From positions 157,914,001 through 157,978,000 of the forward strand of contig JBITNC010000001.1 of the NCBI GenBank assembly GCA_050084985.1: a stretch of DNA of 64,000 bases, written 5' to 3'. Both the position numbers and the translations under genes were made by a program. The notes beneath the pieces are model-generated. The model was not told the origin of the DNA and did not search any database. It worked only from the letters and a program-made list of their open reading frames with translations. Below, one piece after another: positions 17,101 through 61,536 of this stretch. Numbering within the stretch: position 1 is the first letter of the stretch; each line of letters begins with the position of its first letter. This DNA comes from Nageia nagi. Its lineage: Eukaryota; Plantae; Pinophyta.

Positions 17101-17937
17101 TGTCAAACAAGATGCTTATTGCTTTGTTTCCTTTCTACTTCCTTGGCAGAGATGCTTTGTTTGGGCTTCCGGTTATGTTCAATGCATCTTCTTTATATCA
17201 ATATTTTATATATTATTCCTCTATCTAGGTGTATTATGTGAACATTGACAAGTCCACATACATGAAAAGGAAAGTTGATGAGTGTTAAAAGTAGTATGGA
17301 AGGGGTGTGAAAAAGGTTTATTATGTTTTTGTATGGGAAATATTGTAGTGATTTGTGTGTGCTAATAATAATTATTTTATTTTTTATTGTATTGTGTAAT
17401 TTTATGTTTTGAAAATATGTAAAATAATAATTTGAATTTTATAGTTTTTAGATGAAAGATTTATTTCTTTAAATATAATTTTTTAATAGTAGATAAATCT
17501 TATTAATATAAGAAAGTTTTGGTAGAGAGTTAATATCATACAATAGATTGATATATTAAAGATATTACAATTAAAGAGAAGTTTAGAAGTGTTATATGAG
17601 AAATTAAAGAATAAATATGAAGTTAAAGTGTTAACTCATAAATTATGAAGAGTTTATCTTCCTTAAATATGATTTAGAAGGATTTTGTTGTAAACATACA
17701 CCTTGGGTCAACTTGAAGGAGTTCTTTATCAATAGACTAAAGAGATATATATTTTATTTTAAAATTTAAATTAAGTATAAAAAGAAAGTTGTAGCAATTA
17801 CAAATTTTTAAAGTAGAGGGGCATGAGGATAAGCATCGGGTCTAACAAATAAAATGATATGATCATATTCATAATCATAGTTATGATTGAAAAATGACAA
17901 TCAAAGGATCATGTAAGGCAAATATATATAACTCAAA

Positions 17938-18140
17938 GGGGTTGATATGTCAATGAAGAACATGGAATTCGATCTTATCAATCTTGGGTTTAATTCACAC
18001 TAACCTCAATTTACCTGAAGTACTAAACTATTAGACAGTGCAATTCTCCTATAGTGGATTAGTAGTAGCTACCTAAATGTAGGGTTGTAAGACTTTGTTA
18101 GTTGTTGGGGTGGATTAATACCACTACATTATAAAAAAAT
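17938..18140 (+). mobile_element. Degenerate tRNA-derived SINE
   Basis: tRNA-like head with B-box-like gggtttaattc, total length about 200 bp, A-rich tail ataaaaaaat. Confidence 0.45.
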
Positions 18141-20193: not shown

Positions 20194-20698
20194 AGGTTAC
20201 ATAATTATCTAGCTAAGAGACTAATAGCCCCTTGACATGTTTGATAATTCTGACATGTTTTGATAGGTCAAAAATGTTTTCCTGATGCGCCCATTTTTTT
20301 GAACATGTTAAACATATTCATGAAGTTAATATGCAAAAAGAATTTTGCCAATCTATCAAGTATAAGTTAGATAAAAAAATTGAAAGGCATGTTGCTAAAT
20401 GGAATGATGGTATAGAAGGACATTAAACTTTGAATCGAGTGACTTGGGTTTGAATCTTTGAAACATCATTTTAGAAAACTTTGTGAATCTCTATTTTTGG
20501 GACTTGTTTTTTTTTCGATTTTTTTTTTTACATATTTGTAAAGCAAATTTGTTTATGCATATTCGCAAAGTTAATATATAAAATAGTTTTGCAAATCTTC
20601 TCACCAGGAAAAAAATGGCCAACGATATAATGCACGAGTGTGTCAGGAGTTGTTTGGTCATTAGGGGAGGTGATTAGTCCCTTAGATAGACAAATCCT
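20194..20698. mobile_element. MITE-like element A with central tRNA-Gln-like cassette
   Basis: Imperfect TIRs: ttatctagctaagagactaatagcccc versus reverse complement ttgtctatctaagggactaatcacctcc. Flanks are tta and tga. Internal direct repeats at about 20312 and 20558. Confidence 0.6.
20400..20468 (+). pseudogene. tRNA-Gln(TTG)-derived sequence
   Basis: gatggtatag..aggacattaaactttgaatcgagtgacttgggtttgaatc resembles plant tRNA-Gln; no intact acceptor stem. Confidence 0.6.
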
Positions 20699-21099
20699 TG
20701 AGGTTGCCCCATTTTTTCAAACATTAAATCAAGTTTATATATATATAAATTTTAAGACACCGAGATGCAAACATCAAGAGTTTTAAGTTTAAAAATGTCT
20801 AGTGTAATTTTTTATATTGATGTATTGTTAAAGTTATTTATTTTATTATTTTATAGATGAATATGATTTATTTTATCATTATCTATGGTGAATCTTACAT
20901 TTATTTTCAAAAAATATTTTTCATGAATGTATATTTTAGTTCTTAGATTTTATTTTGATGAGAAATCATTCTTTGCAGGGAATATCCTTAGGTTAATTTA
21001 TCATGATAAAAAAGGATATATTTCCAAAAATTTACCTAGGGTTCGCATTTGGCCTCATCCACACCAACCATCATATAATAGGATTTATTATTATGTTCA

Positions 21100-21182
21100 C
21101 TTGTTAGAGGGGATGGGACTTAAACTTGAGTCCCTCACATTTTAGTGAATAATTTTAGCTATCCTTTATCCACTAGCTCCTT
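21100..21182 (-). mobile_element. Possible tRNA-derived SINE head
   Basis: Minus strand ggagctagtggata...gagggactcaagtttaagtccc, with a B-box-like motif. Confidence 0.3.
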
Positions 21183-21467
21183 TAACATGTTCACATTATT
21201 TTTTTTTAGATTTATCTTTTATTTAAGTTAAAAAAAATAAACATAATTTTTTTTGGTAAAATATAAAATTGATCAAAATATTCTTATAAGATAATGGGTT
21301 GATGAAAGATGTCGATTTGTTTATGAATAAAGATAGTATAGTCTATCAACTTTAGAATATAGATCAAAATGTTAATCAAAATGAATAATCAAATTAGTTA
21401 AATTAGAATAGCTTAGATTCATAATTAGCAGTGTAGATACTTAAATTTGATTTTTCATGTTTAATTA

Positions 21468-21792
21468 AGGCAAAGATTATCTAGGGTTTAAAGTAGCACT
21501 ATTTTGGTCATAAAGCTCATCAATGTTTTGATGGAAATAGTCATACAAAATATTTATGGGGCTTTCCATCAAAATGAAACACATAATAAAATTAAAATAT
21601 GGAATGCATTGTTGATGAATGAATCGATGGTATAATGGTTAAGACATTGGAATTTGAATCCAATGACTTGAGTCCAAATCTTGGTGGACATGTTTAACAA
21701 AAATAATTGACACTTAGAATTTTTTGAGATAAAATATTGATGGGTTTTCCCACCAAAATAGTGCTACTTTGGGCCCTAGATAGCCTTGGCCT
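21468..21792. mobile_element. PIF/Harbinger (Tourist-like) MITE B with central tRNA-Gln-like cassette
   Basis: Ungapped TIRs of about 61 bp, about 80% identical (aggcaaagattatctagggtttaaagtagcactattttggt...). TTA on both sides (21465-21467 and 21793-21795). Confidence 0.85.
21620..21692 (+). pseudogene. tRNA-Gln(TTG)-derived sequence
   Basis: gatggtataatggttaagacattggaatttgaatccaatgacttgagtccaaatcttggtgga aligns without gaps to recalled plant tRNA-Gln; stems are degraded. Confidence 0.75.
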
Positions 21793-23129
21793 TTACTTAA
21801 ATACTAAATTTAGATATCTAAAATTTTATTATTTAAAGGTAATAGTAATAAAGTATTTTTTTATACAATATGGTAACTTAATCCAATTTTAAATCTTGCT
21901 TGAAGTATAAGTAGAATGCTTAATGCCATTTCAAAACATCAACCTTCTTGATGAGAAAAACATTTGAATAGTTATATCTCTTAATGGATAAGCCTTACAA
22001 GCTCTCCACAAGCATAAATAAAAATATAATTTCTTGAAGAAGATATTTTTACAATCTTATACTAAGTTGAAAGTTATGTTGTTAAATGGAGAGTTTCAAG
22101 TTAAATCAGATAAAGAGCCGAAGTCCTAAGATCATCAAATAACCTTTAGAACTTTCGACATCCATAAAATGTTTAAATGATAGGACCACAATCAATCATA
22201 TCATTAGCTTCCAAGGCTACCATCAATCCTATTTTTGGGGATTTTTTATTCGTAAAAAGTTACAATAACTTTCAACTTTAGTTTATAGGTTCAGTATGAT
22301 ATTAGTTTGTTCATTTTATGCACTAAATGCATATTTTGAGCAATTTATTTCTTTATTTATTACAATCTTTATCCATTAACCTACACTGGGAGCTTAATCA
22401 TCATCAAGTTTAGTCCTAACCCCATGAAATATCAACAATAAATGTGAAAATCCCTTAAAAAATCGTAATTTGTAGGAGTAACTTGGTAGAGGTTTAAAAT
22501 ATTCCCTGAGGGGTTAGATTCATCCAAATTAGGTAAACAAGAATTTTTTTTTTTATGTTTCATGTTGATGTATGTCAGATCTAGGACTAGTGTTCCTCTT
22601 ATTTAAATTTATCACAAATTTGTTTGTGTGCCCTAGTTTTGAAACTTAACCATTATATCGTTTGATATCACTATATCAATTTTTATTCATAAGAAAAATA
22701 ATATTTATTAATTATAATATTATAATATTTTTCATTTTATTTATATATTTTGTAAACCAATTATTTGCATTAGATCTAGATCTCATCTAGGTTAAACTTT
22801 AATAAAAACTTTATATAAAATAAAACACAAAAATAAAATATATATTATAAAATCTAAAGATGGCCAAAAATATTCTTGCATAAGAATAACTTGGATGAAG
22901 ATCTCAACTTGTTCCTTAGTTAAAATAATTTAGTATAAGAAGAGAAAAAGGTAGTCAAACTCAAAATGGGCAATCAAGTTAGAAAAACTTAAATTCAAAA
23001 ATAGGGGAACTAAGAAAAAAAATTGGAAAGTATGGAATCATTAAAGACAAAGAAATATGAGGCTAAATATGATTTTTATGGTTCAATACAAAGTTCTCTT
23101 TCATTTGAAATTCTAAAAGCTTCAATACC

Positions 23130-60921: not shown

Positions 60922-61536
60922 GAACAATATCCATCCTTCTAAATAATCCCCCTACAAACTCTAACATTGTTAGACAATAGATAATCGATAATCATGGGGT
61001 CTAAAAATTTTCTATTATTGGGGATTAAGAAGAGTCGATAGGTGATTCACTTTAGTTTTTTTTTTTTTTTAAAGTAGAATTGCTTTGGTATTCTCTAGAA
61101 CCACCAGGTGATTCTCAATCAATTTTTTTTTGTAAAATAAGATTAACCTACCAACTATCAATTTCATTATCTATGCCATGGTATAGCAGTTAAAATAGTG
61201 GAGTTTAAACTTAATAGCCTAAGTTTAAATCCCACCCAAGCCTTTTGCCTCCTATAATCCCAACACTTAGTCATTTTTTCATATTTTTTACAAGGAGAAT
61301 TGCTTGATGATTCTAGAGAATACCATAATGATTTTAGAGAATACCATGGTAATTCTCCTTGTATTTTTTTTAAATAAGGAGAATCACTTGGTGATTCTCA
61401 GGAATTTTCAGGTAGTTATTCTTAATCTCCAACAACAAAAAATTGTTGGACCCCACCATTGTCAACTGTTTGTTGTCTAACAATATTAGATGTATTAGAA
61501 TTTGTAGAGGGTCATTTAGAAGGTTGGACAGTGCTC
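60922..61536. mobile_element. MITE C (Tourist-like GAGCA terminus) with central tRNA-Gln-like cassette
   Basis: Imperfect TIRs of about 110 bp (gaacaatatccatccttctaaat... versus reverse complement gagcactgtccaaccttctaaat...). Internal palindromic repeats gagaat...gattctc. TSD not clear. Confidence 0.8.
61175..61242 (+). pseudogene. tRNA-Gln-derived sequence (strongly degraded)
   Basis: ccatggtatagcagttaaaatagtggagtttaaacttaatagcctaagtttaaatccc aligns without gaps to tRNA-Gln, mostly through transitions. Confidence 0.55.

Follow-up and report, generated by a model that had tools for sequence, protein, structure and literature searches.

A tRNA-Gln-like module at the centre of a Tourist-like MITE and of two further inverted-repeat elements in 64 kb of Nageia nagi DNA

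Three inverted-repeat elements and their centres

We analysed a 64-kb stretch of plant DNA from Nageia nagi (hereafter the window), which is AT-rich (G+C 26-36 %), and characterised three inverted-repeat elements located in it, named E1, E2 and E3. The window also carries an ORF for a copia reverse transcriptase (PF07727; 11258-12148, + strand), whose nearest proteins (77-90 % identity) were retrieved solely from ENA and JGI metagenome contigs, indicating that plant DNA near this species is present in metagenome assemblies. ORFs located near E1 and E2 gave no Pfam match. The features of E1 are as follows.

21468-21792, + strand: E1, TTA-flanked MITE of 325 bp with termini AGGC...GCCT (from sequence, arm shuffles and hairpin fold)
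21465-21467, no strand: left target-site duplication TTA (direct reading; equals 21793-21795)
21793-21795, no strand: right target-site duplication TTA (direct reading)
21468-21529, + strand: left inverted-repeat arm, pairing with 21731-21792
21731-21792, - strand: right inverted-repeat arm, pairing with 21468-21529
21546-21574, + strand: copy a of the direct repeat, duplicating the right arm's inner part (24/29 identical to 21730-21758)
21730-21758, + strand: direct repeat copy b, the right arm's inner half (partner 21546-21574)
21575-21729, + strand: module X, i.e. leader of ~46 nt, tRNA-like part, trailer of 28 nt and T6, bounded by the 29-nt direct repeats
21621-21691, + strand: tRNA-Gln(UUG)-like relic (Rfam RF00005 match at 21627-21685)
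21720-21725, + strand: T6 run, terminator-like, 29 nt past the tRNA-like part (sequence)

As the preliminary description of this locus had claimed, E1 was confirmed as a clean Tourist-like MITE with a TTA duplication and a tRNA-Gln-derived centre. Its arms are complementary at 50 of 62 positions (80.6 %), a score reached in 0 of 5,000 shuffles, and as single-stranded DNA the element folds into a long hairpin (z = -7.9). The core at 21627-21685 scored 27.9 bits against RF00005, i.e. just below the gathering score of 29, with an E-value of 0.0056 when 3 kb were searched and of 0.12 for the whole window. The match spans model positions 7-64, the acceptor stem being lost, and the anticodon loop is UUG (Gln). 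This core was the sole tRNA-like Rfam match in the whole window, where no Rfam match of any kind reached its gathering score; ARAGORN, run on the elements with relaxed thresholds included, returned no tRNA.

The similarity of the two 29-nt direct repeats that bound X in E1 was reached in 0 of 5,000 shuffles. Once X and one of these repeats are removed, what is left of E1 is a 141-nt hairpin (62-nt arm, 16-nt loop and 63-nt arm), and this arrangement suggests that X came second, inserted into a hairpin MITE of smaller size.

For E2, the following features were recorded.

20194-20698, + strand: E2, element of 505 bp with termini AGG...CCT and flanks TTA / TGA (sequence, shuffles)
20361-20505, + strand: module X, homologous to 21575-21729 of E1
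about 20401-20466, + strand: tRNA-like part (alignment to E1)
20494-20498, + strand: T5 run (sequence)
20308-20354, + strand: direct repeat D2a, left of X (partner 20553-20599)
20553-20599, + strand: direct repeat D2b, right of X (partner 20308-20354)

The inverted repeat of E2 is only ~21 nt long (86 %; about 20205-20225 / 20673-20693), 1 of 3,000 shuffles being as good, and its flanking duplication is imperfect, with TTA on the left and TGA on the right. A long, variable T-rich stretch lies 3' of X, and the core gave no match to the Rfam tRNA model. In a contig of a related plant (see below), the E2 direct repeat (20308-20354/20553-20599) is present as a palindrome (loose end 20569); this repeat may be the arm of another hairpin MITE family.

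The third element lies towards the other end of the window.

60922-61536, + strand: E3, inverted-repeat element of 615 bp with arms 60922-61031 / 61419-61536 and nested inner repeats (arm matching)
61171-61242, + strand: tRNA-Gln-like relic, then the shared trailer (60 % identity to the E1 tRNA part)
61274-61279, + strand: T6 run (sequence)
61072-61116, partner 61316-61360, + strand: inner inverted repeat around the relic (repeat pairing)

The arms of E3 match over 119 nt (73 %), no target-site duplication was found, and the core had no match to the Rfam tRNA model at E <= 10. Upstream of X, 61068-61089 resembles the E1 left arm in the same orientation (22 nt, 82 %), a weak hint only since 57 of 5,000 shuffles did as well. 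The interior (61056-61404) is an array of sub-repeats of ~63-84 nt, each combining a T-run with GAGAAT..GATTCTC and present in both orientations; one stretch of it weakly resembles the miRNA hairpin family mir-8356 (29 bits, gathering score 70).

Considering the hallmarks of PIF/Harbinger elements, terminal inverted repeats were found in E1, E3 and E2 at the lengths and identities given above, and a TTA/TAA duplication in E1 only. None of the three both reaches the gathering threshold and shows the full cloverleaf of a tRNA gene. No further copy of the E1, E2 or E3 arms was found elsewhere in the window.

The shared module and its decay

Comparison of the cores (profile and pairwise) aligned E1 and E2 over 89 nt (72 % identity, E = 1e-5). 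The alignment of their modules extends over ~150 nt, i.e. leader, tRNA part and trailer, with a score of 79 for a null maximum of 42; that of E1 and E3 scored 44 for a null maximum of 35. When a profile built from the three cores was searched over the window, E1, E2 and E3 were strong and the remaining matches weak (E >= 0.3). One of the weak ones, 17934-18013 (+ strand; nhmmer E = 0.32), may be a very decayed fourth copy of X: it is in register with the E2 module over 80 nt (26 of 3,000 shuffles as good), and no convincing inverted repeat was found in its surroundings.

Mismatches between the tRNA parts are dominated by transitions, which amount to 21 of 25 for E1-E3 (4 transversions, 60 % identity; P = 3e-8), 18 of 27 for E2-E3 (P = 9e-5) and 11 of 18 for E1-E2 (P = 0.006), when random alignment at this composition is expected to give ~30 %. 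Differences among copies are mostly C-to-T and G-to-A, the pattern to be expected if the DNA carried methylation and lacked protection.

The sequences on both sides of the tRNA-like part are also shared. A run of five or six T begins 28-32 nt past it in 3/3 elements (T>=5 turns up in any given 30 nt with a background chance of 0.10), and the trailer motif ACACTTAG..ATTTTTT is found at equal offset in E1 and E3 (22 of 5,000 shuffles as similar). The leader common to E1 and E2, a stretch of ~40 nt just upstream of the tRNA part, runs on from the strong alignment, and is weak when taken alone (356 of 5,000 shuffles). Since leader, relic, trailer and oligo-T are shared across elements, we defined the common unit X, whose layout matches that of a small Pol III transcription unit. 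The preliminary description had reported neither SINE body nor A-tail: the A-tail is indeed absent, but a leader, a trailer and a T-run are shared. Its statement that the tRNA-like stretch is central was borne out, this part lying 13-26 nt from the centre of each of the three elements.

Altogether, the cores of E1, E2 and E3 are homologous, and look like one tRNA-derived module rather than three convergent captures. This revises the preliminary description, which had counted three cases of one design: that these are independent is not supported, as the cores go back to a single origin and E1 and E2 share terminal motifs in addition. Descent from one capture is what the preliminary description itself had named as counting against its interpretation. 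Its view that E2 and E3 repeat the architecture of E1 stands for the inverted repeats and for the homologous central core, but not for the target-site duplication, imperfect in E2 and not found in E3, nor for the match to the tRNA model, which neither core gives.

The TIRs of E1 and E2 had been described as different, wrongly so: both elements end in AGG...CCT and carry TATCTAG equally offset from both ends. In both elements an exact ATTATCTAG stands at 9-19 nt counted from the left end, and CCCT(T)AGATAG occupies 10-19 nt inward of the right end, each being collinear with the core match. Otherwise, shuffle tests of the arms of E1, E2 and E3 against one another were not significant, and an all-against-all short-word comparison was too noisy beyond these E1-E2 end motifs. 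We read E1 and E2 as belonging to the same lineage on the basis of these motifs, and left E3 outside that reading. Direct repeats flank X in all three elements, with a length of 29 nt in E1, about 46 nt in E2 and about 22 nt in E3, where they belong to the sub-repeat array; those of the different elements have no visible mutual homology.

Beyond the three or four old copies in the window, the comparison set included 21 contigs from one small run of a related plant, in which repeat locations, though not copy number or expression, can be read. One contig covers 21615-21741 (~83 % identity) and then runs into sequence unlike the E1 right arm; another holds a ~58-nt palindrome made of the two outer arm halves of E1, without the core; further contigs map to the E2 core. 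The relative thus has X without the E1 arms and the arms without X, so that arms and module are separable. Most of the relative's contigs pile up on another repeat, located between E2 and E1 (21043-21192, - strand), in which A-box-like and B-box-like motifs were recognised by eye and which had no score against Rfam at E <= 10; it is probably the relic of a different tRNA-derived SINE.

When an 18-mer common to the two arms of E1 was scanned against metagenomes, the 18 loci obtained were without exception chance matches, 18-32 nt long and located in unrelated DNA. A tRNA-Gln-like pattern was not found in the bacterial and archaeal genome contigs scanned. A reconstruction of the core from the three copies, favouring C/G at transition columns, was also submitted as a candidate tRNA gene, and ARAGORN called none.

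Origin of the module

The history that we favour, and to which we give an even chance, is that a tRNA-Gln segment was captured once by a small PIF/Harbinger hairpin MITE, after which the composite was mobilised and then decayed. The anatomy, the homology of the modules, the decay pattern and the internal duplication of E1 were demonstrated; to these we add, by inference, that gap repair brought about the capture, that a PIF/Harbinger transposase mobilised the composite and that all three elements descend from it. X (about 140-155 bp) would derive from a nuclear tRNA-Gln(UUG) gene and comprise a 30-45-bp upstream leader, a tRNA part of ~71 bp, a trailer of ~28 bp and the oligo-T. It would have entered a small PIF/Harbinger (Tourist-like) hairpin MITE once, most likely as DNA, having served as filler when an excision gap was repaired, and left the 29-nt host-arm duplication in E1. 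Such a filler would explain why X is central and why host sequence is duplicated; furthermore, the position of the leader, upstream of where Pol III could start, favours DNA-level copying over retroposition. The composite would then have moved by cut-and-paste transposition, hence the TTA duplication. E1 and E2 would be its diverged descendants; E3, a larger inverted-repeat element, has the module at its centre as well, which may have come with a nested E1-like copy. All copies have since decayed, C-to-T and G-to-A changes predominating. E1 to E3 would on this explanation be old composite relics and no functioning system, and today none of them is a tRNA gene or offers TFIIIC a credible site.

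Four observations count against a single descent: (i) the direct repeats beside X are unlike one another, which fits separate insertions better; (ii) the arms of the three elements are not significantly alike in shuffle tests; (iii) one X-bearing contig of the relative departs from the E1 right arm; and (iv) the similarity of the E1 and E2 leaders is weak on its own.

As the main rival explanation, X may be an independent SINE-like tRNA-Gln retroposon with a T-rich 3' end, which inserted separately into the centres of three hairpins or foldbacks and duplicated its target each time; we consider this rather unlikely. Host-sequence direct repeats do occur at X in all three elements, but at 29-46 nt the duplications of E1 and E2 are long for target-primed reverse transcription, and the location of all three insertions within 26 nt of the host centre is unexpected for random insertion. 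A retroposon would agree with the end of X in a T-run, whose distance to the tRNA part is fixed, and with the variable long T-rich stretch after X in E2; its 5' side is more difficult, as the unit common to E1 and E2 includes ~40-46 nt upstream of the tRNA part, outside any Pol III transcript. The separate occurrence of X and of the E1 arms in the relative, as well as the possible fourth copy at 17934-18013 devoid of a surrounding inverted repeat, speak for an independent X, whereas the terminal motifs common to E1 and E2 mean that X may simply have been inherited. A derivation of this kind has been put forward for Helenus and Ajax, from a SINE insertion (Kojima 2024, PMC10886601).

The preliminary description had instead proposed that the cassette may serve these MITEs as a Pol III/TFIIIC module under selection, which would hold them accessible, yield an RNA or insulate, and would carry B-boxes genome-wide. 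X is laid out as a whole plant tRNA unit (AT-rich upstream sequence, A and B boxes, oligo-T at a fixed distance), and Cassandra, Helenus and Ajax are precedents (PMC10946416, PMC10886601). Nevertheless, only one of the three cores comes near the tRNA threshold, the other two failing the model. The invariant C of box B is changed to T in E2 and E3 (2/3 copies), and the best A-box and B-box matches reach 6-7 of the 9 specified positions. In the E1-E2 pair the tRNA part (69 % identity) is barely better kept than the leader (62 %), and the transition-driven decay points to DNA that was probably methylated rather than protected. In addition, a cut-and-paste element can move without making an RNA copy. 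A maintained Pol III/TFIIIC module is not supported by the copies in the window, in which no sign of selection was seen, and we regard this proposal as very unlikely.

Finally, chance resemblance, i.e. an AT-rich tRNA lookalike beside chance inverted repeats, is scarcely credible: the cores of E2 and E3 give no match to the tRNA model, E1 stays below the gathering score and the E2 inverted repeat is short, but the strong transition bias in the pairwise homology, the E1-E2 and E1-E3 alignments that beat every shuffle and the arms of E1 and E3, far beyond chance, rule it out for E1 and for the core homology; only E2, as a delimited element, may still owe something to chance.

Relation to known elements and significance

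Our full-text literature search found no description of a tRNA-cored MITE, in agreement with the preliminary description, which knew of none. A 2025 review of plant MITEs nowhere mentions tRNA or Pol III (PMC12595863). Tourist-like PIF/Harbinger MITEs such as mPing share with E1 a small size, the lack of coding sequence, terminal inverted repeats, a 3-bp TTA duplication, a start in (A)GGC and a hairpin; they differ from it by their interior, which in E1 holds a segment derived from a tRNA gene. DNA transposons can capture host fragments, either by transduplication of the Pack-MULE type or as filler DNA at internal deletion junctions. As in E1, a piece of a host gene then sits roughly midway between the two ends of the transposon, and its junctions show short duplications; what sets E1 apart is a cargo made of a Pol III gene and the sequence flanking it, carried by a tiny hairpin MITE of the PIF type.

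With tRNA-derived SINEs, X has in common a tRNA stretch with A- and B-box remnants, a short unrelated trailer and a T-run. However, the tRNA part is not 5'-terminal in the E1/E2 unit, which begins ~40-46 nt further upstream, X has a T-rich 3' end in place of an A-tail or LINE-like tail, and inverted repeats together with a TTA duplication delimit the element as a whole. Direct repeats of 22-46 nt do stand beside X, which nevertheless sits within the inverted repeats.

Among described elements, the 5S-type Cassandra and the tRNA-like Helenus come closest. Together with Ajax they form TRIMp3, LTR-type elements proposed to result from the insertion of a SINE or of a gene copy into a small pre-existing element (PMC10886601; PMC10946416). 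Like E1 to E3, TRIMp3 are non-autonomous, are not SINEs and carry a Pol III module that stems from the gene of a small RNA. They are, in contrast, LTR retrotransposons with the module within the LTRs, a promoter that makes the RNA template and conserved motifs, whereas E1 to E3 have a DNA-transposon host that needs no RNA, and decayed motifs. Moreover, the tRNA-like part of E1 to E3 lies between direct repeats of 22-46 nt and not inside them, unlike in Helenus and Cassandra, where LTRs flanking a PBS and a PPT contain the small-RNA-like sequence.

A broader possibility is that a MITE lineage carries a complete tRNA-Gln Pol III unit and has spread through the genome, young copies binding TFIIIC/Pol III and the three copies described here being old remains; on present data this is decidedly unlikely. 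If true, such a lineage would be the cut-and-paste counterpart of SINEs and TRIMp3. Wherever a MITE family does multiply a Pol III unit, TFIIIC sites and tRNA-like pseudogenes would be dispersed in the form of DNA, which would bear on thinking about insulators in plant genomes. It would also bear on tRNA and SINE annotation, since current SINE finders discard such candidates: AnnoSINE drops SINE candidates with terminal inverted repeats as MITE false positives (PMC8825457). As seen in the window, what we describe is a decayed capture, whose practical value lies mainly in a caveat for annotation and in a lead for a genome-wide census.
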